A stretch of 64,000 bases of DNA, taken from the NCBI GenBank assembly GCA_043228905.1, contig JBHGNT010000017.1:14136001-14200000 (forward strand), read 5' to 3'. The translations under genes were made by a program, and so were the position numbers. Positions 12,138 through 52,417 of this stretch are shown piece after piece. The stretch is from Azolla caroliniana. Lineage: Eukaryota; Plantae; Polypodiophyta. The notes below the pieces were generated by a model, which ran no database searches, was not told the origin of the DNA, and was given only the letters and a program-made list of their open reading frames with translations. Every line of letters starts with the position of its first letter. Position 1 is the stretch's first letter.

Positions 12138-12140
12138 AAG

Positions 12141-12152: not shown

Positions 12153-12168
12153 GAGGTTGACACAGAAA

Positions 12169-15218: not shown

Positions 15219-15671
15219 TGTCGCGAAGATTCGCGCGTGCGTGTGCTACTCGAGCGACCACCGGGGTCTTGGACTGGGGAGGATGTTCGCGGAATTATCG
15301 AAGAGATGACGATCAATGTAAGATTAGACGGAATTTGTTCACTTGAGAAGAAGAAAGCTTGTACACTTGAGAAGTAGAAAATAATGAAGAAGATAAAGAC
15401 AAATATAATTATATTGATGATAATGGTGTTGGTGATATCACATATTGAGCCCCCCTTACACAAGCCCAACTAGAGGCTTTTATAGGTATTTCCATGCTCG
15501 TGACATGCACATAACCATGGGCTAAAACCATGGTTTTGTGCACACGGTTTTGCTTATGTCATGCACAAACCATGGGTTTAAAACCATGGTTTTGTGCACA
15601 TGGTTTTCTATGGTTGTTTCGTCTATAATTTGTATATGAAAAGGAAATACATAAAATCTACACTATATGAT

Positions 15672-15735
15672 AGTTGTCCTAGTGGTAAGGCAATTATCTT
15701 GTATCTTAGAGGTGCAAGGTTCAATCCTTGCTTGC
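15672..15735 (+). promoter_or_regulatory. tRNA-derived A-box/B-box cassette in the LTR (second copy at 18537-18600)
   Basis: A-box-like TGTCCTAGTGG at 15675-15685, and B-box-like GGTTCAATCC at 15718-15727 within the hairpin GCAAGG-TTCAAT-CCTTGC. No acceptor stem. Confidence 0.65.
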
Positions 15736-15936
15736 ACCCCTCTGTATGAACTCAAGTGCCACTAGGCTAGGTTTATTTGCTAAGTGCATGTGCAATGTTG
15801 CACATCCTTGGTTTATTCATCTCACTCGGTTTCACACCGTAGCCGAAAATCGTCACGACATCCACCCCCACCAAACCCGCACATCCTCCGGTATGTGCCG
15901 AGAAAGGTGAAGAGGTGAGATCTTTGGCAACGGTGA

Positions 15937-18039
15937 TCAACCGAGTTCCTCGTCTGACTTTGTCTTCCACTTCGAGTATGCGCAATCTTTCCAACCGAAC
16001 CACCGTAGCCACCCGATCCACCATATCCGGCGCTCACACCTTCTTCCCCGATCGGTTGTAGTAGATCTACCGAACGATGTCGTCGATACGACCGCTCTTC
16101 CTTCGTCCACCGCGCGTGTCCTTCGATTGGACTCCTGGCCACTCCTCACGCTCACCGTCTTCAACTGGGTATTGTAGATCGTTCGTGTCGATCTCCGATT
16201 AGGCCGGGTTTGCCCTTGTCCGGATCGGTCTCCACCGATCGCTTCTTGGCTTGGTTGGCCTTCGTCTGCATTCACATTTCCCCGAGTCGGGCTCGACTGA
16301 TTGATTCTGGCTGGGTCGGCCCCGTTTTGGATCGGAATCGTCCGATCGATTTTCGCCGAATCAGGTTTCGGCCGGGTCGGCCCCGGTCGATCGGCTCCCA
16401 TGTGGATCTTCCTTCGTTCGGGTCGGAATCCCGGCCGGATCGTCTTCCGGTTCAACCGGTTCTCGACTCTTCCTTCCTTCCCGCATGCAACCTCTCCATC
16501 GAACTCAACCGCAGCTTCATCCTTGGCCTCCACATCGGCCATATCCTTCCCTCCATGTATGCTCGCCGCGAGCCATATTGTCTCCTCTTCGCCACCTCCT
16601 TTATCTTCGGTCTTATGTCGACACACGGTCTCGACTGCCGAAGTCTCCGGAACCAGTGTGAAGGAATCCCTTCGTTCATTTACATTTACCTTGTCTTCTT
16701 CATCGCCCTTCCGGTCGGCCTCTTTTTTGTCCACACATTCTGTCTCTCCGGTCTCACGTTGGTGCACGTGCACAACCGCCGAAGTCTCTAGAATAGGTGT
16801 GGGGATATCCTTTCTTCCTCGATCTTCTTCCTCCTTGTGTTGGGCCTTCGTCTTCCCGTCACCACCTTCCGTCTCTCCGGTCTCACGTTGGCACATGGGC
16901 GCAACCGCCGAAGTCTCTGGAACAAGCGTGAAGAAAGTGTCGACATGGCTATCCGTCGTCGACTCATCCATAGCCACCTCCGACTCGATGTCGTTTGTCA
17001 TGGCTACCTCCTCAATCTCTTCAGACTCAAACACTTTTTCTCCCTCGATCATGCAAGCTTTTCTCATGCTTGCGCCGTCATCACCCGATGTTTCGTACAC
17101 AATGCGTGTTCCGAAACATTTATCCTCCCTCGAAGTGGCGTTCGCCGTCCTCGAGTCATCGGCCTTCTCCTTCGCCGTCGTTTCTTTGTAAGACAAGAAG
17201 GTGACTTGTTTCACACCTTCTCTCTCAGTACCGTCATACCGAACGAGAGCCTTTGTATCGGCCACTTCATTAACCCGCATTTGTTGGGAGGTCTCTTCTT
17301 CCTCGATCACCATTCGCCTCGGTTTTGTCTCCCTTCTAAGCTTCATTTCTTTTGTTGGTGGTGCGTTGTTGCATCTCGTCCCTCTTCGATCGTCCCTCAT
17401 GGGCCGTCTTGTTGTCATCGATATTCTCGCTTGCCCCTTATCGTGTAGTCGGCATACACTTTCCACTTTGCTCCAATCCTCGATGAGGCCATTTGCACCA
17501 TCATCTTCTTCGAGTTTGAGACCGATCGCCATCCTTTCCATTCGATCGATTGACTTCACGAACATAAGGACCTTATCGACCCCCACCAATCTTTGTTCCC
17601 GCTCCGACAATTGAGAAAAATGATGCTCGAAGTCTACGAATGCTTGTGTCGCACCTTGGTAGGTCTTCGCTGATGTCACCCATTGGTCGAAGTTGCGTCG
17701 ATCTTGTCCCTTTAGTCTCTCATAGTCATATTCCTCCAATAGAGCCTTCTCGAAAGTCGCCCACGAATCATGAGCTTCTAGAAGCTCTTCTACATCTTTG
17801 AAGATCGGTTGAGACACCACCCGACAAAAGTACTCCAGCCTCATAGCTTTGTCCACACCTCTTGAATCCATCTCCGCATTGTAGACTTTTAGGAAACTTT
17901 GGACTTCGGCACCGTTGAAATAGCTCATTCGTTCGACTACTTTGTCGACGGCTTGTTGGGCTTCATTTCTTCTTTTCTCTTCTCTCAGAAACTCCATCAT
18001 CCTTCTTGACATTGCCTCCATGAGATATTCGCCATCCAT
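15937..18039 (-). CDS. 700-aa ORF: Gag-like N-terminus and long low-complexity C-terminus with three ETSAV repeats
   Basis: FNGAEVQSFL..Y and SWATFEKALLEEY resemble Ty3/gypsy capsid N-domain motifs. The ORF starts just after the PBS and fills the internal region. No protease, RT, integrase or CCHC motif is visible. Confidence 0.7.
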   Translation of the reverse strand: MDGEYLMEAMSRRMMEFLREEKRRNEAQQAVDKVVERMSYFNGAEVQSFLKVYNAEMDSRGVDKAMRLEYFCRVVSQPIFKDVEELLEAHDSWATFEKALLEEYDYERLKGQDRRNFDQWVTSAKTYQGATQAFVDFEHHFSQLSEREQRLVGVDKVLMFVKSIDRMERMAIGLKLEEDDGANGLIEDWSKVESVCRLHDKGQARISMTTRRPMRDDRRGTRCNNAPPTKEMKLRRETKPRRMVIEEEETSQQMRVNEVADTKALVRYDGTEREGVKQVTFLSYKETTAKEKADDSRTANATSREDKCFGTRIVYETSGDDGASMRKACMIEGEKVFESEEIEEVAMTNDIESEVAMDESTTDSHVDTFFTLVPETSAVAPMCQRETGETEGGDGKTKAQHKEEEDRGRKDIPTPILETSAVVHVHQRETGETECVDKKEADRKGDEEDKVNVNERRDSFTLVPETSAVETVCRHKTEDKGGGEEETIWLAASIHGGKDMADVEAKDEAAVEFDGEVACGKEGRVENRLNRKTIRPGFRPERRKIHMGADRPGPTRPKPDSAKIDRTIPIQNGADPARINQSSPTRGNVNADEGQPSQEAIGGDRSGQGQTRPNRRSTRTIYNTQLKTVSVRSGQESNRRTRAVDEGRAVVSTTSFGRSTTTDRGRRCERRIWWIGWLRWFGWKDCAYSKWKTKSDEELG

Positions 18040-18060
18040 CTTTGTCCTCCCCTACTGCTC

Positions 18061-18078
18061 TTCACGTCGGGTTCACCA
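18061..18078 (-). promoter_or_regulatory. Primer-binding site complementary to tRNA-Trp
   Basis: Plus-strand TTCACGTCGGGTTCACCA equals the 3'-terminal 18 nt of plant cytosolic tRNA-Trp as I recall it. It lies 5 nt from the LTR. Confidence 0.88.
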
Positions 18079-18729
18079 AATGATGTCGCGAAGATTCGCG
18101 CGTGCGTGTGCTACTCGAGCGACCACCGGGGTCTTGGACTGGGGAGGATGTTCGCGGAATTATCGAAGAGATGACGATCAATGTAAGATTAGACGGAATT
18201 TGTTCACTTGAGAAGAAGAAAGCTTGTACACTTGAGAAGTAGAAAATAATGAAGAAGATAAAGACAAATATAATTATATTGATGATAATGGTGTTGGTGA
18301 TATCACATATTGAGCCCCCCTTACACAAGCCCAACTAGAGGCTTTTATAGGTATTTCCATGCTCGTGACATGCACATAACCATGGGCTAAAACCATGGTT
18401 TTGTGCACACGGTTTTGCTTATGTCATGCACAAACCATGGGTTTAAAACCATGGTTTTGTGCACATGGTTTTCTATGGTTGTTTCGTCTATAATTTGTAT
18501 ATGAAAAGGAAATACATAAAATCTACACTATATGATAGTTGTCCTAGTGGTAAGGCAATTATCTTGTATCTTAGAGGTGCAAGGTTCAATCCTTGCTTGC
18601 ACCCCTCTGTATGAACTCAAGTGCCACTAGGCTAGGTTTATTTGCTAAGTGCATGTGCAATGTTGCACATCCTTGGTTTATTCATCTCACTCGGTTTCAC
18701 ACCGTAGCCGAAAATCGTCACGACAGTGT

Positions 18730-19753
18730 GTTTGTGAAGAAGTTCGAAGGAGGAGACTCTCTTATACTCCTCCTGTACGTGGACGACATGTTGATCGTCG
18801 GACGGGACCAGGTCAAGATACGGATGCTGAAGAAAGCGCTTCACCGAACCTTCTCAATGAAGGACCTGGGTCCGGCGAGGCAAATACTAGGGATGCACAT
18901 CATCCGGGACCGGAAGAAGAAGCAGTTGTGGCTGTCACAGGAGAAGTACGTGACAAAGGTGCTTCAACGGTTCAACATGTCGGAAGCAAGACCGGTCGGG
19001 TCAACCCTCCCGGCAAACTGCAAGTTGTCCAGCAAGCAAAGCCCCAAGACAAAGGCTGAGAAGGAGGACATGATGAAAGTACCATATGCCTCTGCCGTCG
19101 GAAGCTTGATGTACGCAATGGTGTGTACAAGACCGGACATAGGATATGCAGTCGGAGTGGTGAGCCGGTATATGAGCAATCCCGGCAAAGAGCACTGGAA
19201 CGCGGCCAAGTGGATACTCCGATACCTGAAGGGTACGACAAACGTGTGCCTCCGATTCGGCTCCGGTAAGCCCGAACTCGACGGCTTTACCGATTCGGAT
19301 ATGTCAGCTGATGCAGATACCAGCCGGTCCACATCAGGGTATGTGATGACGTATGCAAGGGGAGCTGTTTCGTGGCAGTCGAGGCTGCAGAAGATGGTTG
19401 CGTTGTCAACCACGGAGGCGGAGTACATGGCGGCTGTTGAAGCCGGCAAGGAAATGATATGGATGAAGGACTTCATTAGAGAGCTCGGTATCCGGCAGGA
19501 GGAGTACCGACTCTACTGCGACAGTCAGAGTGTCATCCACCTTGCGAAGAACGCGGCCTATCACTCCCGGACGAAGCACATCCAGCGAAGATATCACTAG
19601 ATCCGGGAAAGGATAGAAGACCAGGAGTTCGTGCTGACGAAGATCCACACGGACGAGAACGGGTCAGATATGCTGACCAAAGTGCTCGCACCCGACAAGC
19701 TGGAAGCGTGCCGGAAGAGGATCGGATTGGAGAGACATCCCATGCCGAAGTGA
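18730..19753 (+). pseudogene. Copia gag-pol, part 2 (RT and RNase H) with a premature TAG at 19598-19600
   Basis: LYVDDML, FTDSD, STTEAEY, CDSQS, RTKHIQRRYH*. The stop replaces the usual Trp and the frame continues to TGA at 19751-19753. Removing the nested element restores SDHCVFVKK. Confidence 0.92.
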
Positions 19754-19763
19754 AGGGGGAGTT

Positions 19764-20353
19764 TGTTGGGATTACGGTCCCTCCGGATGGGATGGTCGGA
19801 TGTCCGGGAATCGGATGACGAAGACCCCGGCTACGGAGCCGGATGACGAAGACCCCGGCTACAGAGCCGGATGACGAAGTATGTACCCGGAGAGAGATCC
19901 GGATGCGGGGACATATTTGTGAATATGTTTGCCAAGGGCCCTTGAGGCTATATTTGTAAATAGCCCGAAAGTCATATGTGTATAAATATGACTTAGGGCA
20001 AACAGTTTTGTTGTTGTTACTCTTTTTTCTGGTTTTCCACTTAGAGGGAGCTAAGTGAGCAGCCGAGAGAGAGAGAGAGAGAGAGACGAAGAGGTCGTTG
20101 CCTCTGTGTATTACCGCCGCCTGTGGCGAAGACAGTGAGCTCAAGGTTGTTGCCTTGTAGCTGCACCATTGTACATCTCTGTTCATAGTGATAGTTGGAG
20201 TTTGAGGACTCCCGTGGTTTTTCCCATTTAGGGTTTTTCACGTAAAACATCCTGTGCACTCTTCTCTCTATTGTCTTCGTGCATTGTGTATTTCCTGTTT
20301 TTTGTGAGTTGATCCTATTCCTCGGTTGTGGCCGAGCACTGCCTTTTTTAACA
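19764..20353 (+). repeat. 3' LTR of the Tork-like copia
   Basis: Near-identical to 11546-12137 and preceded by the PPT GAAGTGAAGGGGGAG. Confidence 0.95.
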
Positions 20354-22110
20354 GCATAGTCAATTGCCATTTGAACATTTAAAATATTATGTAAAATGTC
20401 TCTTTTTGCTAAAAACCCATATTGAGCATTATGAATAATAGAAGGTAAAACCTTATGCAACCTATTGGCCATCACTTTTGCAAAAATCTTGTACATTCCC
20501 CCCATCAATGAAATAAGCCTCCATTGAGCAAAGGAAGATGGAGAAGGCACCTTCGGCAAAAGCTTGATCAAACCAATCTTCCAAGAATGAGGCATTTCCC
20601 CTGATGTCCACACCTTCTGAAATAAAATCGTAAAAGGCCCCTTTAACTTAATCACATATTTCTTAAAGAGTTCATGAGTTAATTCATCCCACCCATGACT
20701 CTTATCATTAGCAAGATGTGACATGACATGTTCCACCTCATCCTCTGAAATATTAGCATCTAATGATTGTGCCACATCATGCGATACATGATTTTTCACT
20801 CCATTAAAAAATACATCTCTATCTTTTTTAACATTATCATCGATACACACTTGTACATCCAACAATTGTGTATAATATTCTATGCATTTCTTCACAATTT
20901 CTTGAGGATCGGAACACATGATACCATTTTCCTCTAACCTTACCACATTATGTCGTGCATGTGATTCATGAAGGTCATGGAAAAACTTATGTGATTGACA
21001 ATTAGCATCATCCACTTCTTGTCTTAGACGATGTAGTCTAACATGTTGATAATTTTTTGTCATTAGGTCATGCATCGCAGAAATTAATACCTCTTGATAT
21101 CCCATCAACTCTACATCCGTTGGCCAATAAGTTAACAATGAGTTGCATTTATCAAGCAAATTAACTAGGAGACTTAATTTCTTTCTCCTTTTAAAAGCAT
21201 GGTGAATTCCATAATATCTAGTTAACCTCTGAACATTTGCAACAAATACTTCCCACACTTCATACCCATCAAATTGAACACGATAGGCAAATGCATCAAT
21301 CAATTGACACATATAGGCATGGAAGACCTCATGATCCAAAAATGATGAATTAAAAATCAACGGTGGTTTTCCTAAAAACTCATGAAAACCTCTAATTGAG
21401 TGGTGAATGAACTCAAAAATTAATGGGAAATGATCTGATATAATTGACCCATAAGACACTGAAATATCCAAAATCTCTGGTAAAAAACCTTTGGTATGCA
21501 TTACATACATTCGATCCAACCTACTCCAAGTATCCTTATATTGAGCCGATTGAAAGGTATAACCAGGTTCATCTCCCTTGATCCATTTCCATACATCCCT
21601 TAACATGACTTCAATCTCAAAATCTCCCCATTCTTGAGCCTCTGGTCCATCCATAATAGAGTGGATAGATGTTAATTGATCTGTCTCACAACAAACATTA
21701 AAATCTCCCATCAATAAACCCGGTCTACCATTATGAAGCGCTAAGTTTAGAGATCTCCATAACAACTTTCGTTCTTGTGAAATATTTGATGCATACACAC
21801 CAACTAACCAAATAGCTTGCCCTTCATAACATATCTCTACCACAATAAATCTTCCAAATTCATTTGAAACAATTACTTTTGGGTGAAATTTATCTCTTAT
21901 AAACATGACAATCCCAGAATAATCCCCATGAACCTTGCCAACATAACATAATGTATAACCCTTAGAATAACTAATTAAACCAGCATTCCGATGATCTTTA
22001 TGCTCTACTACACATAAAACATCCCATTGCTCACTTAACACAATCCTCCAAACCTCATGCATTCTAAATCTAGAACACAATCCCCTCACATTCCATGTGG
22101 TGATCTTCAT
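20354..22110 (-). CDS. L1 ORF2, 5' half (APE endonuclease and start of RT), interrupted by the copia
   Basis: TWNVRGL, GDFN, SRLDR, SDHFP and WRLISL..YKIFAK motifs. It ends at QMAIDYA at the copia TSD. Confidence 0.9.
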
Positions 22111-23432
22111 ACTTTATTTTTTCCTTTTATTCGAGAAATCTCCTTCTCCTTCACTGCTAATGTTTCTGCCATATCCTGAAATAAATCCCCTAAGATTGCA
22201 TATGAATTACTATGGGAATGCAAAACTCCAGACCCCGATGGCCCCTCATGTGAACAAGGCACCGATTTCCGTTTATTCCAAGGAACATACAAATTACCTT
22301 TATTATCAAAAGATAATTTCTTTGGATAGTCCTCTTGACGAGCCCATGGTTTATTCCGCATGGGATGTGTCGGTGTGACCTTCTCCATAGATACATTATG
22401 CCCAACATTTTTATTAGACTTCTTCATCTTTCCAGAAACTATTGACCATTGTCCTTCATCCTCTAGAGTCTTTCCATCCTTCTCATTCACAATTTGTGGT
22501 TCCTTTGTTTGCTCTGAAATTGTCAAATCTTGAATCCGATCATGAGTTGTAGGCTCTTCATGTACCACTTCCACTACATTATTTCTTTTTTGAGGACATT
22601 CAGCCATAAAATGCCCCAACACACCACAATGGAAACAATGTCTTGCAAATGTACCCCATTTAAGCCGAAAATACATATGTGGCATACCAGAACATGCAAT
22701 CTGTAAACAATTTGGCCTCTTTATAGCAGTATTCCAAAGAATACACATCCGATATCGATTTTGAGCATTAGCACTAGGAGGCACCAAGATCTTTCCCAAC
22801 TTTTCCATCGCTGACCGTAATATTGGCCAAACCACTGAATATGTGCACTCTACCTCAACCCATACGGGACACTCTTGCTTTAATATATCTTGATATTCCA
22901 CTAATGGTCTCCACGGAACAATATGAACCAAACTTTTCTCATAAAAAACTGGCAATTTATTGAGTAATTTCTCTTTATACTCTTGTGATACCAAAACAAC
23001 CTCATAAAATCCACGAGGACCAGCATAAACATCCTGAACACAATCAGCTTGTAAAATCCCACGTAACCATTGTTTGACCCTCCAAAGGAAAGGTATCTTT
23101 CCCGTGAAAAACAATATGACCCCTTTATCACAAAAATTAGCAAGTGAGCCCAAAAACTCCTTATTGTCTATTTCTACCTTAGCCACTTCATCGTCAACAA
23201 ACTCCTCAGTAACTTTCACATTCTCCCTTATACAATCTTCCATTAATATATTTGCCATGCATCTTAAATGTTCCCAATGACTATCATCTTTCTCAATATC
23301 ATCTTGTCGCATTGCATCAACATAAGACATGTCATTACTATTATCTCCAATACATCGTTTTTTTACCATCCCCTCTTGGGCTTGATACTGACTCAACCAT
23401 GCACGCATCCTTTGAAGAATTTGGAGACTCAT
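22107..23432 (-). CDS. L1 ORF1 (441 aa; DUF4283-like RNA-binding region and CCHC knuckle)
   Basis: Plant L1 ORF1 layout: VHIVPW, PVWVEV, CFHCGVLGHFMAEC. Its stop overlaps the ORF2 start as ATGA. Confidence 0.85.
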   Translation of the reverse strand: MSLQILQRMRAWLSQYQAQEGMVKKRCIGDNSNDMSYVDAMRQDDIEKDDSHWEHLRCMANILMEDCIRENVKVTEEFVDDEVAKVEIDNKEFLGSLANFCDKGVILFFTGKIPFLWRVKQWLRGILQADCVQDVYAGPRGFYEVVLVSQEYKEKLLNKLPVFYEKSLVHIVPWRPLVEYQDILKQECPVWVEVECTYSVVWPILRSAMEKLGKILVPPSANAQNRYRMCILWNTAIKRPNCLQIACSGMPHMYFRLKWGTFARHCFHCGVLGHFMAECPQKRNNVVEVVHEEPTTHDRIQDLTISEQTKEPQIVNEKDGKTLEDEGQWSIVSGKMKKSNKNVGHNVSMEKVTPTHPMRNKPWARQEDYPKKLSFDNKGNLYVPWNKRKSVPCSHEGPSGSGVLHSHSNSYAILGDLFQDMAETLAVKEKEISRIKGKNKV

Positions 23433-23677
23433 CCATATTCATAAAAACACTACCATTCATATGACAAGAAATAGGAGAGAGTTCACTTACAAGTAATTGT
23501 GTTAGAGAAGGAATCAAAGCAAGCGATCATGAGATGCATGCAGTGGAATGGAATTTTTACTCGTAACGTTCTAAAAAGACCTCCGAATGATACGAATGGT
23601 ACTCTTTAGAAAGCTCTATGTGCAGGCTTCGAAACGAGCTAAAGAACAAAGGAAACGGACACCGTAGCAAGAAGATA

Positions 23678-23727
23678 CATCAAAATTAGTGTTTGCCCTT
23701 CTCCAACATCTCCGAACTTTGCGTTTT

Positions 23728-23773
<46 letters not shown>

Positions 23774-24200
23774 CCTACCTACCTATGTAGGGTGAGGAAC
23801 GTCCTATAAAGCTAATAGAAAACCTGAATATGCACTTGAGGAAATGGTCCCTACCTTCTCTAACATCCAAAAATTTCACATAGAATGCCCCCGAACTTCT
23901 TCATATATGCTTTCACCCCTATGTCTACTATCAAACATAAAAGCATTACGAATATTCCAATTGTGTTGCAATCCCCGATAATGTTTTTTTATTCTCTTCC
24001 AACGGAATGGTACAAAAGACACATGTACTTGAACCCATTCATTGTTTGCTTAAGGTTGAACCTAATGGGACCCCATCAATCACGACTCTCCATATTAATA
24101 GATTTGCACAAAATGGAAAATGGGAATGCCAACCATGTTGCAATATTTGCCATCAAAATTAGTGTTTGCCCTTCTCCAACATCTCCGAACTTTGCGTTTT

Positions 24201-24258
<58 letters not shown>

Positions 24259-24640
24259 CCTACCTACCTATGTAGGGTGAGGAACGTCCTATAAAGCTAA
24301 TAGAAAACCTGAATATGCACTTGAGGAAATGGTCCCTACCTTCTCTAACATCCAAAAATTTCACATAGAATGCCCCCGAACTTCTTCATATATGCTTTCA
24401 CCCCCATGTCTACTATCAAACATAAAAGCATTACGAATATTCCAATTGTGTTGTAATCCCCGATAATGTTTTTTTATTCTCTTCCAACGGAATGGTACAA
24501 AAGACACATGTACTTGAACCCATTCATTGTTTGCTTAAGGTTGAACCTAATGGGACCCCATCAATCACGACTCTCCATATTAATAGATTTGCACAAAATG
24601 GAAAATGGGAATGCCAACCATGTTGCAATATTTGCCATCA
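23678..24640. repeat. Tandem duplication of ~480 bp (23678-24150 and 24151-24635)
   Basis: The copies differ by two substitutions seen and by (CT)n length. CATCA microhomology occurs at 23678, 24151 and 24636. Confidence 0.95.
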
Positions 24641-25495
24641 CTTTGCATTTGACTCACATACATTCCACATGTTTCTTGATTTTGGCGATTGACAAGACAA
24701 TGATGATATAATATATTCACATTGACATGTAACGAGACTTTATCATCCTCTAATTGCCAATCTACCCAAAGAATCTTGATTTTTGCTTGATAATGTTATT
24801 GTATGCCTTTAAGCGGGCATTCTCATAGTTGATTGTATTGATATTGTGTATCAAGGGTTTGTTCCATATGTGCCTCAAACATTCCTTGGTTTTTCTTTTC
24901 TTTTCAATCTCATTCAAGATAAGCATATATAATATAAACAAAATCATGGATTCACAACCATTCTTAGAATGTACCAAGTCTATACTAGATGGATAAGTCA
25001 TGACTCACAACGAAAACATGGAATGTGAGTGTATAACATGTAACCTAACTCCTGAAATTGATTGCCAACACCACATTGAATGCATGTTTCAGAACTCTCA
25101 ACGAAACTATTAAACGAGTGTAGAATGTGAGATGTAGAATGTGTTAATCTCACTCGTGTTATTTGTTTGTTGGGGTCATGGAATTGAATTAATGATGAGG
25201 CAATCAATGAACCACATAAAAATGGCCATACCAATACAAAAACAAGTCAATAACAATACAAACTAAGATGGGACCAAACTTTTTAAGTTGAGATAAGACC
25301 GAAAAGTCAAGGAGTCAAGAGGCCGAAAGTCAAGGCATGACCAAAGGACAACATGAACCAGAATACACCTAAGTCATATACATATACTGTATACATATAC
25401 ATATATAGAAAATCATAAGAACACATAGAAAGAAGAGCAAATTAAATGGTCATGCTAGGCAACACTCTAGAGGGTGGCCAAGGTGGAGGAGGAGA

Positions 25496-30146: not shown

Positions 30147-32666
30147 TCACTCCAAATCAGCAATTCCAAGATTTGATACAATAATCTTTAGCTGATCAAC
30201 AAAATCAGACCCTGTGGCATACTCTGTAAGCAAGCCAACAGCTATTCCAAACATAGCCCACCTGGAATAAAAAAAGAAAGCCCAGAATATGATGTCAAAA
30301 CAAGACATCGTTGTTCCACATTAATTCAGATTCGTCATTTGACATTAATACATATCAGTAATCCATACTCCAATGCTAATCATAGATGGATGATATAGGT
30401 TGTACATGAAACAATAAGTTACTCAGAATCCAATCAGAAAATATTATTTCCAATTTTCACTTTGGGTTAGATTTGTCAATCTAGATCATATGATCCACTT
30501 CCGGAGATGCACATTAATCATCAAGGGAAGCAGGAACTTTAGAATTGCAAGCAATGTCAGTATATTTTTCCCCAATTGCAAAAGTTTAATGGGAAGAATT
30601 GGCTGGCTTCCCTGGTCTTCAGGCCATTGTCTAGATAAAGCTATTGTCTTATATTTTGTTTTCTACTTTCAGACTCTTCTTATGCAATTAAGAAATCTCA
30701 CAGCATGCTGCTTGTTGAAACCATATAGCTGACTTGATGGCACACAAATTTCTGTTTCAGACAAACAACAAAGGCTGTGTAACTAGCTAAAGAACCTCTA
30801 GGGTAAGTAATCATCATCCGAAGCCATGCTAATTTTGCCTTAAAACAATGATGGCCCATCAAAGATGCAATGGTTTATAGACCTTAATTTCACCAACTTT
30901 GCCTAGTTTCAGATATTGTTTGATGTAATTTCCCAAACAAACATTGGTAAGCACAAATTTGGAAGTCACTTACACACTTAAATCGAAGTTCTTTCCTCAT
31001 TGGAGAAAAACTCAATTCCTTCATGATGGCCACCTTACTTAAGGTCTCTGCTAGAGAACTAAACTTCCCTTTTTGGTACCAAAGCTCCAAACCAAATTCA
31101 TGCAAGATTCTGCACATCGGACCTTTCATCCCTAACACTTCATACTTTCATGATCATCAAATTTTCTTCCGTACAAGTATGTTACCATTGTTCAGGAACT
31201 TACAGTTCTTTGCCATGAATCACAAGCAGTGTGACAAAAAAATGCATTTTTATGAAATTGACTGAAACATCCGTCAAACTTGACATTAAAGAATTGTTCC
31301 CTTTACTGCGAGATGTTCCAAAATGCATTTCACGCATATAGAGAAGCTGACACTTCTGATACAATGTTATTTTAGAGGAAATTTTTACACTCTTGCTCTT
31401 CTTATTTCTGAAATTAGTTTCCAACTAATCTCTGAACTCCTAAAAACCTACAATCTGAAATTCAGAATCATCAGCCAGATTCTGAAGTTCTCTAGACTAA
31501 ACTGATGAAATATTAGAGACAGTTCATTTTGTATCATAAATTGTTTACTTCAACTGATGTTTTTTGAGGCATTTGCAGACAATGGTCCATTGTTTTTCCA
31601 CAAAGAGAATCACACTACATATATAGATGGATATGACACAGAGTTTTGGTTATATATAAGTTATGCATGACCTCGGGTCAAATTGGGCTCCCTAAGGATT
31701 GCCCTTTGAAGCAAATGGTACTTTGCTGTTTCTTTGTGATAGATCTTATAGTATGAATTTGTAGAAATCTACACTAGGTTGTGGTCATCCTTATTGATAC
31801 TCAGGGTGTAGATAATGACATTCACTCATGTCCTTTATGTCATATATGCTCACCTTCAATAATAACATCAATATTAAGCAATTCAATGATTACTCTTACC
31901 ATCAGAGAAGTCAGGTTCCATTACAAGCAATGCCATTATGGATAGATTTGAGTAAGTACAGAAAACAGCATTAGGAGCTGTCACCCACTTATTCCATTAT
32001 TTATCCTGAACTTATACAGCGACATTCAATCGAAATACCATTTCCGGCATATTATCCGGCTATAATATTTTCTTACAATAGGATAAGAAAGGATATACAC
32101 AACCCAAATTTCACAAAGACGCCAGCAGAATCTTTCATTTACATATCCATTTACCTGATCTATGGATCACACATCAACATAGAAGCTATATACCCCAAAA
32201 AAGCAGAATCTTTCAACAGATTCCAGAATCAACATTTATGATTAACAAAAAGGGCGTGTTTGAGTATCGTAACACACCTGCCATTGTTGATCTCGTTCTT
32301 CGAATTCCATCCGAAGATCCGTCCATCTGCGGCTTGCTTCTCGTATTTCCTGTCAAGGAAATACTCTTGAAGCTCTTTGGCGCGCTGCCTCTGATACTCA
32401 ACAGTGACAACAGAAGAAGAGGAGGAGGAGGAGGAAGTAATAGGAGGTGGAGGGGTAGATGCTGGCGATGGCGATGGAGATGGCGATGGAGATGGCGATG
32501 TGGCTTCTTTCACAGGAATAGAAGGTCGGCGAATGGGGCCTTCAGAGCTCGCAGAGGATCGGATGGAAAACGAAAGCGGGGGGAGGGAGGATCGAGGGAG
32601 GAGGATGGATGGCAGGCTGGGGTTGAGCAGGAGCGATGAAGGAGGGGCCATGATGGGCGGTAGCAT
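30147..32666 (-). CDS. OHP2: One-helix protein 2 (LHC-like), exons 32666-32278 and 30261-30147, 167 aa
   Basis: Transit peptide and Pro/Ser-rich linker, then VTVEYQRQRAKELQEYF..KNEINNGR|WAMFGIAVGLLTEYATGSDFVDQLKIIVSNLGIADLE*. The ~2-kb intron is GT-AG. Confidence 0.95.
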
Positions 32667-32670
32667 CAGC

Positions 32671-32766
32671 GTCTCTGTCTCTGTCTCTGTCTCTGCTGTC
32701 TCTGTCTCTGTCTCTCTGTCTATGTCTGTGTGGCTATGGCTATGGCTATGGCTATGGCTATGGCTC
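32671..32766. repeat. Compound hexamer microsatellite (TCTCTG)n(TGGCTA)n just upstream of the OHP2 ATG
   Basis: Read directly from the sequence. Confidence 0.9.
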
Positions 32767-34319
32767 TGTTTCTCTGATATCCTATTTTCATTTTTATTTT
32801 TTTTATTTTTATTTATTATTTATTTATCTATGTTTATTTCTTACTTTTATTTTTATTTAATCCATTTATTAATAAATAACGTGGAGCATTGTTTGCCCTG
32901 CTTCAAGCCTTATCCTCCTTCACTCATGAGACCCACCTCCTCCCCCGAGTCAAGACAGGCAAAACAGAGAGAGTTTTCGAGCACTTTGAGATCCTAGCGC
33001 CTCCGCTCCGATCCACAGATGGATGGATGGATCGATCGATCGATCTGTGATCAACTAAATGTGGATTGATCGATCCGTGATCGGCTAAAGGCGGATTGAT
33101 CTATCTGTGATCAATCCACCTTTAGCCGGATTGTTGCGGCCATTGTAATCGTAAAAGGCTAGTTTTTCTAGCAAACTCTCTACCTTTTCGCAATGCTCAA
33201 ACTCCACTCACTAAGTCGTCGAACGATAAATCGCACGTTATAAGGGGCTTTGCGTCTTCAATGGAACGAAATCAATTGAGGCCGAAGATATAGGCATGAA
33301 GTAATAGCACCACGATATGGGAGATGTTGGTGGTGTAAACAGGCTTGTAAGGATATCCCATGTGTGGTCGTACTACGTGCTTGATCTCCTCCATACATGA
33401 AGGCATGCTCATTTAAAGAAAACACTTGCATGTATGGGTTTATACATGTGAAATTGCAAGAACGTAGGGGGATTGGTCGATTCCAATTAGCAGTTTAGCA
33501 AAACGACACAAAAAGAGAGGACATTTTACCATTATTCGGGACATTTTACCACTATTAGATTAGTGGCAACTCAAACTCTTATTTTTTATCAACATAGGCC
33601 AAATAGTGGATATATGTTTTGGCACCCATTTCATTTAGGCACCTTTAGCCTATATTTGGTGGTCTAAACACTCTTTAAAGAAATATTGCCTCATTGATGT
33701 TAACTTATTGTGTTCTTGATGCATATGCACATACTATAACTTGTTCGATTGTGTCAATCATCCATGAACTAATTAATTAATAGGCAAATTTCAATCCCAA
33801 GTGTTATGCATATGCTTAAATCACTAAGGTGGAAAATTTCCCCTGTTCTCCTCCAATGTGAGGATGCCATTTTAAATATATCTTAAAAAGAGTACTCATC
33901 TTCAAGAGGCATCTTTTTTGTATTGTTTTTCAATTCCTGACTCCCACATTTCATTTTCAACTATATAGTATTTGGTGATTTGGTGTAAAGTCAAAGAAGT
34001 TGAAAAAGGATAATTGCTTTTTTGAAACAACTGTGTTGTGTTGTTAAGATGAAAATCCCTATTTGGGATTTCTAACATTCCATTTGTATGTGTGGCAGGC
34101 AACCAATTGTGGTAAAACACACTCACCATATGCGTACATCTAACTTGCATGGGTTATTATAAGATCGTCCTCCAAGGTTGAAAAGTTGTAATTGTTACTT
34201 CCTCGTCTCACTCACCCAAGGTAGCTTCAAGATAATATGGTACAAACCATCGAAGTGACAATCTTGTCTTGAAGAAGATGTTGCATGTCTTTCTTCCTGT
34301 CATATATTTTATTTTTTTA

Positions 34320-35385
34320 AGCAATAGATTCTATTATTAACCTTTTGGGAATACAAGTAACAATTATTTTATTTTATTTTCCAAAATAAAGCTACTTTCC
34401 CATTAGTTAGGAAGGATTATTACAAGGAGACTATACAAGGAAGCTTATACACAAAACGGGGAATCTCCCTCAGATCAAGATCAAGAAAATTAGACTACTT
34501 ACATAGTTTTTCAAACCGACTACCTAAAGTAAGTAGATACCTATACCTAAAAGCAGTGGCCTTTAGTGTCAGCCGGAATGAGCCGACTCTCGGGGCCTAC
34601 ATCGAAGGGAGGGAGGCGTGAAAGAAGGAAACAACCATCGTGGGGGCTGGTAGTTCCACCTCAGTCCACTTTCTCCTAGCGTCACCATAGGCGTGTTCCG
34701 CCATTTCTGCCAAAAGCGCAACCGGGCAGTGGCCACGTCATTGGAGTGGTTGCAAACCTCATCTAATTGCCCTCGTAGGCAATTGATAAGCACGAACCAG
34801 ATATCCATGATCACTTCCTCTGGGGGTTGTACCCGATCTTGGAAAACCTTTAAGCATCGTGCTTTCCAGACATACCATAAGGTGAAGCCCGCGATCAACC
34901 TCCAAATTTCCAGGAACCTAGGGGATGCAGACAACAAGTCTCTCTCGAAGCGGATCTTGCCGATTTGGCCTCCCGTGCATACATAGCACCAAGTATCCAC
35001 ATTAAAGGCGTCCGTCCACTATCAGTCGAGTGGTCAATCCATGCCGTAGCACTCCACGAGGCTGTTCCAACCACTTCACATGCCGCAAGGAGGCGAGTGA
35101 CTCAGTCCCATACCTTTTGAGCTTGAGGGCAATCCCAAAGACAGTGTCTCAGAGACTCAATGGGTGAAGAGCAAAGTGGGCAACCTATTGGGCCGCCACT
35201 TTTACCAAGCCATTCCCCAACAGGAATCACATTGTGACCAATCTGCCACCAAAAGAGCTTGATTTTTTCAGGCATGTGGAGACGCCAGAGACCCTTCCAA
35301 AAGGTAATGAGCACCTCGTCAGGGATGCCCAATGTTCGCCATCCATTACGAATGGGACCATCGAGCTGCAGTTGTAAAGTCCACC
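34320..35385 (-). mobile_element. 5'-truncated L1 fragment (zinc-finger region and 3' UTR)
   Basis: PEKIKLFWW..CPLC..ESLRHCLWDC..VW and LWYVWKARC..VF motifs. T-rich tracts near 34305-34380 fit a tail; the boundaries are approximate. Confidence 0.8.
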
Positions 35386-36278
35386 CCAATTTAGTGCTAT
35401 ATTCAAAGAGTGTGAAACTAACCTACATGTTAATGTATTGTACATTGGAAATATGTAAGAACTTGAAAGAGCAAATCCCCGTTTTATTTTTCCTCAAATA
35501 TTTCATTTTCAAAATTTCATATTTCAGAAGCATCGATTCTCATAGATTATATTTTTGGATTTAATTTGTATAAGCTTTTTTAGAAGGCATTTTATGTCGT
35601 TGTACAATATATTTCTTCCTATTTATTGTGCATGCCAAATCAGTTCAATTTATTGTGTTTATGATCATTTTATCCCAAATATAATAATCTTTGCCAAGGC
35701 TTTAAATAACGAGATCATGATATGGCCAACCAAATGCAAACATTCAGATGAAATTCTAGCCAATAATCAATCCATCTAGTGCAACACATACGATCCCATA
35801 GTCTATTGGTGTGCTAAAAAATGTTGAAAGTTGGGAGCCAAAACTAGTGAGCATTAGGTATACACAATCATCTTCACAAAGACCATGACCATACACGAGT
35901 TCTACATTTCTAACAACTCTATCCGCCAACAAGAACCACCACTTCGACCCCAAGCCTATGATTGCCAACAACTCAAGCATAGAATACTGAAAAAACACGG
36001 AGACAGTGACAACCAACATCCACGTGTCTATCCGATAATTGGCCATTGCTATCCAATCCATCTAAATGTTGCTAACCTTAGTTGGTAAAGGAAGGAGGCT
36101 CGTGCCCTTCAATATGCATGTAAACAATAACAAGTCATCCTAAATAAGTGGGCTCATAACCCATTTATGAGAGCAAGAGATACTTACGATCATCTGGAAA
36201 GGTTGTATGAGCATGTTTCACAAAACTTTCTCTCACTAGTCACTTCCAAACTCCCAATCATGCATGCATGGTAGTCAT

Positions 36279-37222
36279 TGTTAGGATCTGAACCGACCAC
36301 AACCGGTTTCTCTCCATGTACTTACGAGTGTAAAGAAAAATGAGCAAGAAAATGTCCATACAAAAAAAGAAAGAGAAGAACAGAAAGACTTAGAAATGAG
36401 ACACAGATATTTAACGTGGAAAACCCGCAAAGGGAAAAATCACGTGGAGTCCACAAACTCCAAACATATCACTATGATGAGATGAAGTACAATAAGAAAT
36501 TTGAGGCAATAACCTCAAGATCTTCTTCGTTTGACTGACTGACGATTACAAAGTTACACACTCTAACTCTCACTCACTCTCTCTCTCTCTCTCATAGTTG
36601 TTACAGAGGCAACTACCACAGTGTAACTATACGAATGATTTTCCCTTTCATAAAGTTTGCCCTAGGTATATATATATATATATATATATATACTCATATA
36701 AACAACAAACTATTTACAAATATAGCCTCCTCAATTGGCTATTACATCAATTTTCGATTTTGGTTGGCCTCAACCGAATTACTCATCGACACCATGGGAA
36801 TCGGTTCTCTCCTTCTCCTCGATTCGAGCTCCACTTCCCATCCGGAGGGACCTGTTATCCAACAAACTCCCCCTTCACTTCGGCATGGGGTACTTCACCA
36901 ATCCGACCCTCTATCGACACTCGTTCAACTTCTTTGTTCATAACATTTTCGTCAACATATCCAATCCATTTTTGGCCATGTGGATCTTCATTAAAGCAAA
37001 CTCCTTTTCTTCTACTTGCTCTCGAAGCCAATGATATCTTCTCTAGATGTGTTTGGTTCTCGAGTGGTAGGCGATATTCTTCGCAAGGTTGATGGCACAC
37101 TAATTATCGCAATAGAGTCAGAATTCGTCTTGCCGAATTCCCAACTCACCGATAAACTCCTTCATCCATATTATTTCCTTGCCAGCTTCTATTGCAGCCA
37201 TAAACTTGGCCTTCGTGGTCGA
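36279..37222 (-). mobile_element. Remnant of an older Tork-like copia: RNase H tail, PPT and 3' LTR (36279-36864)
   Basis: CATGCCGAAGTGAAGGGGGAGTT-TGTTGG PPT/LTR junction matches the 11546 element. The LTR has GGGTTTTCCACGTTAAA, and the RNase H remnant is cut at 37222. Confidence 0.85.
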
Positions 37223-37521
37223 TGTTGAGAATCAAGCTCAACCTAGCCTAGTGTGTGAACACACCCTTGAGAGTGTATGAACACTCAAAGGTCAAAAGTC
37301 ACATCACTACTCATTACACGTTACTATGTGTCATAGAATCATAACTAATGAGTTTCCACATTCCCCATGCCTCATGAACTTCGGTAGTTAATGACGAGAG
37401 AGAGTGACTATATAAAGCACTCTCCTCCTACTTTGTAATAGGTCGGTTAATCTCCTTTGTAATACACAATCTTCTTGAGTATTCTTCTATCTATCTTGTG
37501 TTTCTCTCCTCTCCCTCTCTC

Positions 37522-37553
<32 letters not shown>

Positions 37554-39881
37554 AACACACATCTCTAACCTATTTCACCATTGTTAACTCTTAGGGCCGG
37601 ACAATGGCCTAACACAGAGTGTCTACGGAAGACACTTCACCAAAGGGGTGTTACGGCAATAGGATTAGACTCAACGATTAATCCGACTTAATTAGGTTAC
37701 TTAGCATGATCGTCTTTAATAATCACACACGTAAGATATAACAATGAATGCAGAACGACAATTAACACAGAGAGATAACAACACTAAGCTTTATTAAGTA
37801 ACCGCTATTCATTACATTGTATCCGGGCCTTTAAATAGATTTCCGGTCTGTATTACAAAACGGTGCCATCCGCAGCTGTTCGGAATTGGTCCGGATCCGG
37901 AACAGCATACCGATTCCGGTCCGTCCGTCTACACTCATAGCTTACTTACAACCATTCCTACTAATTAAATAACTCCCCGTTTCACACTCTGGACTCCTTT
38001 TCCGGCCGGTAACACATGGCACGCTCGTGGGACAGTACCTTGTACGTCGAATCCACAACCGACCCTTGCTATTCTTCGTCCAAAATATCCAGAATGCTTT
38101 GTTCGAGAGTCTCCAATGGTTCATCTGGAATTGGTTGTTGTTGTTGTTGCTGCTTTGTTGATGTCTGCTGCGACGGGTCCGTTGGTGGCTGTTGCGGCTG
38201 CTCCTCCGTTTGTTGCTCTGACACCGGCGTCTCCGTCGTTGCTCCCTTCGTCGTAGTGGTCTCCGGTTGACTGGTTCCGGGTTGGCCCTCGGCCGTCAAC
38301 GGTTCCTCATCACTAAGGTTAACCATTGCCGCTTCCCGTGCTTTTTCTTCCCGAACTCGGGACCGCTCGTAGCTTTCAAACTGGATTTGAGCGTCCAGCC
38401 TATCATCGTCTAGCTGAGCTATGAGTTGCCGGACCTGCGCCAGCTGTTCATCCGCAAGGACTTGGAAGTCGTCGGCCAGCTTGTCCCGTATGGTGGTGAA
38501 GTCCTCGGAAGTCAACGTATAACAATCATCTCCTTCCTTCCGCCGGTTTGCCACATCTGCTCGTAGCAATTGGAGTTCCGCCGCATTTTGTGCCCACTTT
38601 GTCCACCATCTTACGGAGCTTTCGTCAATCAAGTGTTTTGTCTGATTCAGCCATGCCCGTTCCCAATTGCGATTTGATTTCCGCCGCTTGCCGTTCCTCC
38701 TTCAGTTGCTTGATGATTTTGACGTTGTCTTCCGCCTGCTCCTTGTAATGCGTCAATTGCCTTTGATATGTGCTTTGTAATTTCTGCAATACTGTTGACG
38801 CTCTCTCCTTTTCTTCCTGCTGCTGCCTCTGGAGCTCCATCTGGACCTTCTCCACCTCGTCCAACCGTCTTGTATTTTCCGCACGTTCGTCGGCGATCGC
38901 CGTCGCGGCCCGATCAACTTCCTACTGGAGCTCGGCCATCCGTTCCTTATGCTCCGTTTCCAACCGTTTGTAGTCCCGGTGCAGGTGCTCAAAATCATCT
39001 GTCTTTTGCTTGAGTCGTGCGTTGATCTATTGACGGGCCCGGTCCTCGCGGTCCTTCTGCTAGCGGAGCTCTTCCTTTAGCCGTTCAATTTCCGTTTCCG
39101 CCGTCTTTCGCAGCTTGTCCTTTTCCTGCAGCACTTTGTTTTTTTCCTCCCTTAACCGGTCGTACGCTTGATGGCCTTTCCGGAGGCTCTCCTCTGCCCA
39201 GCGGAGGTTCTCAGCAGTCTTCTTTAATTCGGCTTCGGCCGTTGTCTTCAATTCCCGTTCACGGCTCCTTAGCGCTTCTTGTGCGGCAAGTTCATCTCTC
39301 AATTTCGCAAGCTCCTGGGCTTGCGCCGCATCTCTCGTCGGAACGGTTTCCATTGCCGGGGTCTTATTGGTATGTACAGGTCGATCCGTTTCTTTATTCT
39401 GTACACTTACCGGAGTCACCGGTGATTGGATCTGTGTTGCCGTTAAGGCCATTTTGGCCATCTCTGTCGTGACCTGATCCAAGTCTTTTTCAAGGCACCG
39501 GATTCTGGACCGGGCCGTTGTCGTGAAGATTTTCGGCAATAGTGTGAAAATCCCATAAAACGTACAAAATCGAGTATGAATCATGTAATACAATAATTGT
39601 GAAGATAACATTTTTAATATCTAAGTACAAAATGATGGAGGTTTCGAATGCACTTTATTACACGAGAAATGGACAACTAAATGTCAAGATATGAGGGTAT
39701 AAAGTTTGTGAAAAGAAAAGAGAAAATTGTGAGATATCCCACATAGGCACGACAAATACGGCTCTCATCATATATAAGGTGGAGCAAAAGATATTATCTT
39801 TGTGTCTATGTGTGGAGCATAGAGAGTTCAAGGTAACTTGAACTTAGAGTGGAGGTGGCTAGCTACTCGAAAAGGGTTTTG

Positions 39882-40120
39882 GCCAATCGCAATCCGGCGA
39901 CGGCATGCGGCACCGGTGATCCGACGGCATCCAATCGCAATCCGGCGGCGGCATCCGGCGTCGGCGTCGGCATCCGGCGGCGGCACCGGTATCCGGCAAC
40001 CGGCGATGGAGCCGGTGATCCGACGGCATCCGACTGCAATCCGGCAGCGGCATGCGGCACCGGTATCCGGCGGCGGCATCCGGCGGCGGCACCGGTATCC
40101 GGCGACAGCATCCGGCGAAC
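39882..40120. repeat. GC-rich minisatellite inside the solo LTR
   Basis: Reiterated ATCCGGCGGCGGC and CACCGGT units. Confidence 0.9.
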
Positions 40121-40170
40121 CTGCGACTAGATAAAATAAATATATAAAAATATATACATATACAAGGAGG

Positions 40171-40237
40171 GCAAGTATGGATTCGAACCTTGCACCTCCA
40201 AGTTAAGAGTCAAATGGCTTACCATTAAGCCATAGTA
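40171..40237 (-). promoter_or_regulatory. tRNA-derived A-box/B-box cassette in the solo LTR
   Basis: A-box TGGCTTAATGG (40232-40222), consensus B-box GGTTCGAATCC (40189-40179), and GACTCTTAAC resembling a tRNA-Lys(CUU) anticodon loop. Confidence 0.75.
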
Positions 40238-42046
40238 TTTAGTTGAAATTATATTTCTATCATTGTACTTTTACATGTAAATTCTCATCCATGAGTGCTA
40301 AAATGAGTGACATGGTTAGCATGCACCACATGTAATACTTAAGCGCCAAATGGCAAACATGCAATTTATGCATGTCTTGTACCCTCACATGCATCATATG
40401 CATGAGAGCATCTATAAAAGAGGGAAGGGGGAGGAGAAAAACATGGTTTTTTTTTATGAAAATTAAGAAGAAGAAATTCGTTTTCAAATCAATCGTGTAA
40501 TCTCATCTTCTCTCTTTCCCAATCTATCTTAAGTACTTTCTCGCCAAAGCTTGTATCGACTCTAAATCCTTCTGGTCCAGAACCCCGGCGGTTCCGCCTC
40601 ACGATCGCGCGTAGTGACGAATCTTCACGACACCGTCTCTAGTTGTTCGGTTGTGACGAGCAACCGTTCGCTTTGCGCTCTTTCTTCCGCCTCAATATAC
40701 CCCACTGCTCCGGCAATCTGTTCGCCTATCCACCAGAGCCACAGGCTACCGGTGCATTGTTGTGCTTGCACGGAGTTTTGACAGATGGGCTCGCTTGTAG
40801 ATGGGTGGTCCCGCCTGATTGCGCCGAGTTGCAATTCCGTTTCAGCCTGTGGACCACCCTGCTGTCTTGGTTCCCCTTGCGCTTCTTCTTGGTTGGCTAA
40901 GGGAGGCTGCATTGACCTTTCTGGCTCTAGCGGGATGGGACTTGCCGGTGTTGCCGGTGGTGCCGGGGCTTCTGATTCCGGTGCCATGCACACCGGTTCC
41001 CGTTCCTCCCTTAGCATGGGAGTCTCAGTATGGGGAGCCGGTGTTCCCTTCGTCTGAGGGTTCGAACGTTTCCCGGCTGCCTCAATGGTCCTTGCTGACG
41101 ACCGTCGCTGGAGGTGCTCCGTAGGCTCCTCCTCTATTTCCTCTTCTTGAGTCCCGCCATTGAGTTTTGCCGCCAAGGGGTCCGCTTCTCTATTCATCGG
41201 TCGGTGGAGTGTAACCTTTACGGGCCGTGCCGGTGGTTCCTCCTGCGCATCCGTTGGCCGCTTCCGGCTGCCGCTCTCCTTTCCCGCCTGTTCTGCGTCC
41301 GTCGCCTTCCCCTTAGTGGCCTTAGAGGCCAATGGCTGTTGTCTTTTGGAAGCCGTCTTTGGGGTGTCGTCCGCCACTCTTCCTCGCTTCTTGGGCTGGA
41401 TGGGCTGGACGGGTGGCACAAGCAAGGTGATCCACTACGTTATGGCGTGCCATATCCTCCGTCCGTCTCGGCCTTCTTTGTCGTCTTTGCCTCGGACGAT
41501 CTCGATCGCCGCACACAACCCGTCTGCGATCAATACCGGCCAATCCACCTTGATCCCTTCATAGGTGGCGATGATCATCCCTGCCCGGTTCTGCGGCATG
41601 ACAGGGGGTCTAGGGTACACATGGCCGTATTCGTGGAGCACACGAGGAATCTCGCGGAACAACATATCTCCGCCACCCTGTGTCTGGTAGCCCTTGCTGG
41701 CTAGGGAGTACTCACCAAAATACCTGATGAGTTGCTCCGAGGTCGGATTGTCAATCGTGAGTCTGCCTCCCTCCGGAAGGCCTGTTAACGCTTGAATCGC
41801 CTCCGCCGTTATGACCTCTATGTCGATTTCTTTGATCACCTTGTCGGCTTCTTTGTGTGGCAGTACCTCCATAATCATCAAGAAGCCCTCGAGCCCGTGT
41901 TGCTTTAGCCATGTCTTGGCGGCTTCCGACAACGTTTGCGGGTCCATGTCTGTGTCGAGGTCGGCTTGTGGCGGCGAGTTTGGCTGGTGATGAGAGTGAG
42001 AGTGAGAGAGAGAGAGTTCAGAAGGCGGGGGTTCTCTGAGTGTAGG

Positions 42047-52361: not shown

Positions 52362-52417
<56 letters not shown>

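Follow-up and report, generated by a model that had tools for sequence, protein, structure and literature searches.

An antisense tRNA-like block in the long terminal repeats of a protein-coding Ty3/gypsy lineage in Azolla caroliniana

The closest described counterparts of the sequence reported here come from miniature terminal-repeat retrotransposons (TRIMs), among which Helenus, Ajax and Cassandra have long terminal repeats (LTRs) with tRNA- or 5S-derived promoters (PMC10886601). Helenus elements (TRIMp3) are 311-1263 bp long and devoid of open reading frames (ORFs), and in their LTRs lies a stretch of tRNA origin whose A and B boxes are conserved, which makes up no working tRNA and is proposed to have originated from a short interspersed nuclear element (SINE) inserted into an LTR (Kojima 2024, PMC10886601). 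The tRNA-like part has been proposed as the element's own RNA polymerase III (Pol III) promoter, with the expectation that autonomous partners use RNA polymerase II (Pol II) and do not share the segment, and the same study mentions briefly that tRNA-like sequence is present in 'not a few LTRs' of Repbase (PMC10886601). Cassandra, also a non-coding TRIM, has a 5S-type (type 1) promoter in sense, and transcripts from this Pol III promoter have been reported (summarised in PMC10886601). Here, we analysed a 64,000-nucleotide stretch of Azolla caroliniana DNA (assembly GCA_043228905.1, contig JBHGNT010000017.1, positions 14,136,001 to 14,200,000 of the forward strand; hereafter the window) and describe a tRNA-like block in the LTRs of a Gag-only retrotransposon at 15219-18725 and in a solo LTR that belongs to a sister family. 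At ~75-115 bp, the block is a relic with an A box, a B box and a T-arm hairpin, built into the unique 3' region (U3) of the LTRs of one Ty3/gypsy lineage and inherited with a fixed orientation and a near-fixed spacing to the TATA box while the remaining U3 turned over.

The comparison with these TRIMs reveals one likeness and several differences. In the LTRs of Helenus-1_SMo and three Helenus-2 ToGe sequences (supplement file 2 of PMC10886601) the tRNA-like part stands in sense, followed by a T run in the Helenus-2 ToGe LTRs and with the acceptor stem kept in Helenus-1_SMo. The gypsy lineage shares with Helenus a tRNA-derived A/B-box stretch inside the LTR, but here it is antisense, lies ~230 bp before the TATA box (measured from the B-box anchor) and is without an acceptor stem, and its carriers are coding elements, namely a 3.5-kb Gag-only one with a 700-aa ORF and a ~7-kb autonomous one. 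When the block was compared by eye with Helenus-1_SMo, nothing was alike beyond the boxes. Cassandra resembles the gypsy block in that a segment of a Pol III-type small-RNA gene is conserved in plant LTRs, and differs in that the gypsy block is of the tRNA type (type 2), antisense and part of a protein-coding lineage.

The block and its setting within the LTRs

We compared the 642-bp LTR of the Gag-only element (LTR1) with the 1114-bp solo LTR by blastn at sensitive settings. Their ends match over 31 nt at the 5' terminus (87%) and over 58 nt at the 3' terminus (67%), and the surroundings of the TATA box match weakly, while the strongest match by far is an island of 119 columns with 71% identity (E 4e-14) that holds the block and lies, in LTR sense, at 114-230 of LTR1 and at 642-757 of the solo LTR. 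The initial annotation had described two LTRs of very different length with shared termini and a retained tRNA-like block, and these matches bear it out, with the correction that the block, which it put at ~65 bp, belongs to a shared island of ~119 bp. It had also placed A and B boxes in a block that is antisense and ~180 bp before the TATA box, which agrees with the distances of 190 and 180 bp that we obtained from the A-box edge. In all three window copies the block is antisense to its LTR and contains the core GAGGTGCAAGGTTC exactly, and the B-box anchor is ~238 bp (LTR1) or ~227 bp (solo LTR) from the TATA box.

Using the consensus TRGCNNAGTGG for the A box and GGTTCGANNCC for the B box, 30-60 nt apart, an exact A box together with an exact B box at tRNA spacing was found once in the window, in the solo LTR, whereas none of 300 dinucleotide shuffles of the window has such a pair. 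Looser matches to both boxes are frequent by chance, so the case rests on the exact pair plus the conservation described below. Type I copies have an A box with one extra or mismatched base. The distance from T8 to G52/53 in the block is 43-45 nt, as in tRNAs. Read in the tRNA sense, a T5 run follows in the solo LTR, 32 nt past the end of our search pattern (see below), which falls in the B box.

The sequence around the block differs from family to family. Between LTR start and block, the solo LTR has ~530 bp extra, including a GC-rich tandem array. In the interval between block and TATA box (18351-18536 in the 5' LTR of the Gag-only element, 40233-40411 in the solo LTR, 940-1130 in L067, an autonomous carrier described below), the LTR1 type repeats AAACCATGGTTTT, and the solo and L067 types repeat CATGCA(T). 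The enhancer-like region has been swapped between families, and block, termini and TATA box have been retained.

A coding lineage and its further copies

The lineage is characterised by target-site duplications (TSDs) of 4 bp, a tRNA-Trp-type primer site, a capsid-like ORF1, which is joined to DUF4100 in relatives, and, in relatives such as L067, an ORF2 with reverse transcriptase (RT), RNase H and integrase. The Gag-only element of the window totals 3507 bp, lies on the minus strand without pol and has the structure of a Ty3/gypsy element, i.e. TG..CA LTRs, a TSD, a primer binding site and a polypurine tract (Table 1). We take its primer site TGGTGAACCCGACG to be complementary to the 3' end of plant tRNA-Trp. 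Pfam returned no match for the 700-aa ORF. The first ~210 residues have 297 homologs, the longer of which carry DUF4100, and an AlphaFold model of the first 215 residues (17 homologs, predicted local distance difference test score 87) gives an all-helical, two-lobed domain. Each of the best PDB matches of this model is a retroelement capsid (dArc1/2, Arc, Ty3, copia, PNMA2 or HIV CA), although the matches are weak, with E 0.15-1, probability <=0.93 and TM-score <=0.62 on target. On the predicted fold, and not on sequence, it is reasonable to regard the N-terminal domain of the ORF as a Gag capsid-like domain. Relatives fuse the capsid-like domain to DUF4100 (PF13352), suggesting that DUF4100 is part of Gag in this gypsy lineage.

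The Gag-only element is a young, non-autonomous member of the lineage, inserted within the RT of a copia element (LTRs at 11546-12137 and 19764-20353, 99.2% identical). The gag-protease-integrase-RT frames of that copia element (11546-20353) are otherwise intact, the RT being split by the nested gypsy-derived element. Around the Gag-only element, with its 100%-identical LTRs, the TSD is imperfect, reading GCGT at 15215-15218 and GTGT at 18726-18729, a C/T difference at a CpG.

An autonomous carrier was found in L067, which over ~7 kb contains a 5' LTR from position 701, a tRNA-Trp-type primer site, ORF1, ORF2 and a 3' LTR. ORF1 encodes 716 aa with DUF4100 and is 33% identical to the window ORF (E 1e-33). 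ORF2 has the gypsy order of RT (RVT_1), RNase H and integrase (Integrase_H2C2 and rve), and the order RT-RNaseH-integrase is also found beside the protein P0107. In the last 232 aa of the L067 ORF2, the one element searched with Pfam at E <=1, there is no chromodomain and only a weak match to SH3_Tf2-1. Both LTRs of L067 contain the antisense block. The proposal that a protein-coding family carries the block is supported, the window ORF being capsid-like by its predicted fold and homologous to ORF1 of an autonomous element that has the block. The two L067 LTRs (701-1671 and 7437-7963) differ strongly outside the block and promoter region, and their T stems differ as well (GCAAGG/CCTTAC and GTAGGG/CCCTTAC). 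A recombinant element and a chimeric assembly are the two readings of this contig.

Other carriers were reached via ORF1 homologs. Through P0001 we reached L057 (= L001), with two LTRs and the block in both; positions 157-5560 read LTR-internal-LTR-internal-LTR, where two different internal regions (~77% identical to that of the window) share the middle LTR, and the arrangement is either a true tandem element or an assembly artefact. In L085, reached via P0024, one LTR has the block, which is one mismatch off the search pattern and 241 bp from the TATA box (nhmmer E 1e-16). The primer site of the Gag-only element also follows the LTR in L067, L082, L085 and others.

Further copies came from two sets of contigs. 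Logan contigs from three related organisms (four runs), aligned over 17950-18800, include thousands of LTR1-family pieces. In each of the four runs their depths peak locally over the B-box half; being per-contig sums, the depths were used only to locate such maxima and not as copy number. Loose ends of these contigs at 18545/18567 and 18587/18612 have flanking letters that agree poorly, indicating that the block is all that other sequence families have in common with LTR1. When metagenome contigs were searched with a degenerate 20-nt pattern taken from the B-box half, 77 loci came up, with 52 true hits in 50 loci, all from one set of plant-contaminated ENA assemblies; the other matches are chance ones in GGTTCAAGGTTCA-type repeats. 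Wherever a true copy has sufficient flank, its LTR begins TGTCGTGA.GATTTTCGG, ends GAATCTTC.CGACA and is followed by a tRNA-Trp-type primer site, the block stands antisense within it, and the distance from the B-box anchor to the TATA box downstream is 163-299 bp (mode 225-242). Across copies, the LTR starts 83-667 bp upstream of the block, an eightfold range. Three copies without a TATA match are truncated LTR1-type fragments, and the A-box half is missing in one of ~53 copies (L012).

The solo LTR is itself nested in another LTR element (LTRs at 37582-38014 and 47215-47647). An 88% identical direct repeat (37272-37539 and 52096-52380) brackets that element and may represent the two LTRs of an older element around it, in which case the nesting would have three levels.

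Table 1. Coordinates of the block and of the elements that carry it in the window.
Feature	Position	Strand	Details
Block, 5' LTR of Gag-only element	18537..18610	+	A box 18540-18550, B box 18583-18592; nhmmer E 4e-23 (46-block profile, this copy included)
Block, 3' LTR of Gag-only element	15672..15745	+	A box 15675-15685, B box 15718-15727
Block, solo LTR	40161..40235	-	exact A box TGGCTTAATGG 40232-40222, exact B box GGTTCGAATCC 40189-40179
TATA box CTATAAAAG, 5' LTR of Gag-only element	18342..18350	-	190 bp from A-box edge; 3' LTR copy at 15477-15485 (-)
TATA box CTATAAAAG, solo LTR	40412..40420	+	180 bp from A-box edge
5' LTR, Gag-only element	18084..18725	-	642 bp; 100% identical to 15219-15860; TG..CA ends; primer binding site next on minus strand
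3' LTR, Gag-only element	15219..15860	-	642 bp; purine-rich tract just inside at ~15861-15880
Primer binding site TGGTGAACCCGACG	18065..18078	-	directly after 5' LTR of Gag-only element
ORF, 700 aa	15937..18039	-	first ~210 aa predicted capsid-like (Gag) domain; remainder low-complexity
Solo LTR, sister LTR family	39519..40632	+	1114 bp; perfect 4-bp TSD CCGT
GC-rich tandem array in solo-LTR U3	39883..40117	+	periods 13-99; units such as GGCATCCGGCGGC; otherwise AT-rich U3

Conservation of the block and competing explanations

The account that we favour overall, with moderate confidence, is that the block was captured once by an ancestral LTR and then kept by selection as a cis-acting DNA module, perhaps one that recruits TFIIIC, with or without Pol III. 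It would have entered the ancestral LTR most simply as a tRNA-derived SINE or as a fragment of a tRNA gene, and selection acting on the element would have retained it. Part of the evidence lies in the comparison between families. In 542 ordered pairs of LTR segments with <35% alignable sequence, the alignable part is confined to about -30 to +90 around the anchor, with an alignment coverage of 0.5-1.0 inside these limits and of <=0.1 beyond ~±110, and the search pattern fixed only 20 bases of the alignable block. With the pattern removed, the window copies are 57-84% identical to other families in the block, the corresponding values for the 5' and 3' flanks being 9-68% and 15-83%. In an alignment of 46 blocks the A-box core T.TGGTA.G is kept at 96-100%, A14, G18 and G19 are conserved at 98%, the CC of the B box at 83-87% and CTTGCA at 83-96%.

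Several observations weigh against this account. Most of the extra copies were found via a 20-nt pattern that lies within the block, and many are close kin, so that conservation of the core is partly given by construction; they also come from short-read metagenome assemblies, where repeat contigs can be chimeric. Within the LTR1-type family the block has a nucleotide diversity of 0.20-0.25, and a CCATGG-repeat stretch by the TATA box (+130 to +270) is tighter, with 0.09-0.15. L082 was reached via P0022, an ORF1 fragment with 56% identity to the window ORF. This fairly close relative shares the primer site and the TGTCGTGA start, and yet its LTR (L082:292-1604) has no block according to the nhmmer block profile. 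The distant relatives L080 and L081, from other genome assemblies and with ORF1 ~29-30% identical, have the same primer site and no block either. ARAGORN called 0 tRNA genes in the window and in 56 fetched loci, and a permissive search with Rfam RF00005 gave 13.2 bits in LTR1 (E 4.3), below the gathering score of 29. Compensatory changes are nearly absent over the 46 blocks, leaving a folded RNA product unsupported, and LTR1 of the window has no T4 run inside the LTR.

Taken with L002, which like L080 and L081 is a distant ORF1 relative without the block (LTR limits being uncertain in this group save for L080), these cases make the block common in the lineage and not universal. Its distribution does not track ORF1 similarity, which points to loss or exchange of LTR modules. 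A weak sense A/B-like motif with tRNA spacing at L082:516-570 was considered as a second, inverted cassette and rejected; it goes unrecognised by the nhmmer block profile, and the mismatches in its boxes do not differ from chance. For the U3 start and the R/U5 regions, diversity in the LTR1-type family is 0.3-0.5. The block is a deep module common to families, and the promoter-proximal enhancer is family-specific and tighter within the family. For the earlier claim of a module under selection the picture is mixed: the block is the sole interior stretch alignable between divergent families, but lower conservation than in the TATA-adjacent stretch within a family, the near lack of covariation and the block-less L082, L080 and L081 speak against it.

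The block was further assessed as a tRNA and as a folded RNA. In the runs of tRNA finders and Rfam, which covered the window, the block regions and the 56 fetched loci, nothing passed as a tRNA; Rfam at gathering thresholds gave no match, and the permissive RF00005 search gave nothing for the solo LTR or L070. By inspection, the block has no acceptor 5' strand and no anticodon stem, and the surviving tRNA-like parts are the D-arm with the A box, the T-arm with the B box and the former 3' acceptor strand CTTGCAC(C). The block is, as read from these parts, a relic with tRNA-type boxes and not a tRNA. On 46 distinct blocks, pairing and covariation were tested for an alternative long hairpin, for the T stem and, in two registers, for the D stem. 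Pairing holds in 67-69% of cells for the D stem and in ~90% for the T stem and the alternative 8-bp hairpin GGTGCAAG/CTTGCACC. Since compensatory changes are nearly absent, pairing counts cannot decide between RNA and DNA level. The initial annotation had pointed to a compensated D-arm hairpin, which amounts to one pair and does not hold generally over the 46 variants. On the tRNA-sense strand the long hairpin has 21 G-U cells against 5 A-C cells, and within 60 nt downstream, in the tRNA sense, 26 of 50 copies have a T4+ run and 6 of 50 an A4+ run; both figures are inflated by kinship among copies. The G-U excess and the T-run bias are weak hints in favour of the tRNA-sense strand.

The most serious alternative, if a doubtful one, is a conserved U3 module that does without Pol III, be it a Pol II enhancer, a platform for transcription factors or a signal carried by the untranslated U3 at the 3' end of the element RNA (the GGTGCAAG...CTTGCACC hairpin, for instance), so that the tRNA ancestry would be mere history. 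Conservation does exceed the boxes, as CTTGCACC is kept at 83-96% and a GAGGT stretch is conserved as well, the 8-bp hairpin is paired in ~92% of cells, the cloverleaf is not retained, and the fixed spacing to the TATA box would suit a Pol II promoter element. Such a module would, however, have to account for the high conservation of A14, G18, G19 and the B-box CC, which lie outside the search pattern and at exact tRNA spacing, for the strand bias of the downstream T runs and for the G-U cells, which favour the antisense strand over the LTR RNA.

It is improbable that the block is a functionless hitch-hiker whose seeming conservation stems from young families, from recombination of LTR segments or from the search pattern. 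The diversity of the block within a family is only average, L082 does without it, the block-based search introduces an ascertainment bias, and the relationships of LTR and ORF1 disagree (33% ORF1 identity with the block in L067, 56% for the fragment of block-less L082), which suggests module exchange. A hitch-hiker is difficult to reconcile with ~100 nt at the block, 70 of them outside the pattern, that can be aligned between families when other U3 sequence cannot, with the constancy of orientation and TATA spacing despite the eightfold range in the distance to the LTR start, and with the retention of both boxes in young, presumably active copies with identical LTRs.

Independent insertions of a free tRNA-derived SINE into separate LTRs are very improbable and excluded for practical purposes: in the solo-type family AT/TG low-complexity sequence and T runs, much like the tail of a SINE, come after the block, but all ~52 copies, among which we looked for the free SINE that the initial annotation had named as the counter-case, lie in LTR-homologous context, in the same orientation and with the same spacing to the TATA box and the LTR 3' end, with no constant tail and, on inspection, no flanking TSDs. 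The block resembles the heads of tRNA-derived SINEs in its A and B boxes, tRNA spacing and decayed cloverleaf, in being missed by tRNA finders and in the T run of about half of the copies, and differs from them in having no free copies, no TSDs of its own and no tail of the type found in long interspersed nuclear elements, as it moves only within the LTR. Read-through into the primer tRNA was also considered as an origin and rejected on inspection, the block being unlike tRNA-Trp and sitting in U3, away from the primer binding site.

Possible function and meaning

For a module captured once and kept by selection, the mechanism that we tentatively prefer is that TFIIIC, perhaps joined by TFIIIB and Pol III, would be drawn to the boxes in the neighbourhood of the LTR's own Pol II promoter. 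Binding of TFIIIC or Pol III to the block is plausible. Recruitment could keep U3 poor in nucleosomes or shield it from adjoining heterochromatin, and about half of the copies, those followed by a T4+ run, might give rise to an antisense RNA of ~100-130 nt made by Pol III. It is possible, though rather unlikely, that the autonomous gypsy lineage has made a tRNA-derived TFIIIC/Pol III platform a standing divergent part of its Pol II LTR promoter, which would serve either as a chromatin barrier carried by the element itself, by which new copies could still be expressed in heterochromatin, or as a source of regulatory short antisense Pol III RNA.

TFIIIC-bound sites, such as tRNA genes, extra TFIIIC (ETC) sites and boundaries of the SINE B2 type, act as barriers or insulators in yeast, fission yeast and mouse. 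The gypsy block, with its putative binding, resembles them as a B-box element adjoining a Pol II promoter, and differs in that those boundaries are host loci or co-opted SINEs, whereas the block would be an inherited part of a retrotransposon promoter. In the openly accessible literature, Repbase itself aside, the Helenus study and general reviews were all that came up, and we found no description of an antisense, TATA-linked tRNA-like cassette in coding LTR elements.

LTRs with pieces of small-RNA genes have been known only from tiny non-coding elements (Cassandra, Helenus, Ajax). In the gypsy case, the piece stands backwards before a Pol II TATA box, in a lineage that is protein-coding, present in high copy number and recently active. 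On a practical matter, such blocks mimic SINE heads and tRNA pseudogenes, which is of relevance for genome annotation. Should nothing bind to it, the block would be a conserved U3 module of curious ancestry; if TFIIIC or Pol III does bind, the retrotransposon would come equipped with an insulator or Pol III unit of its own, and one plant genome holds thousands of natural copies and variants of it, with the block, without it (L082) and with differing spacers.

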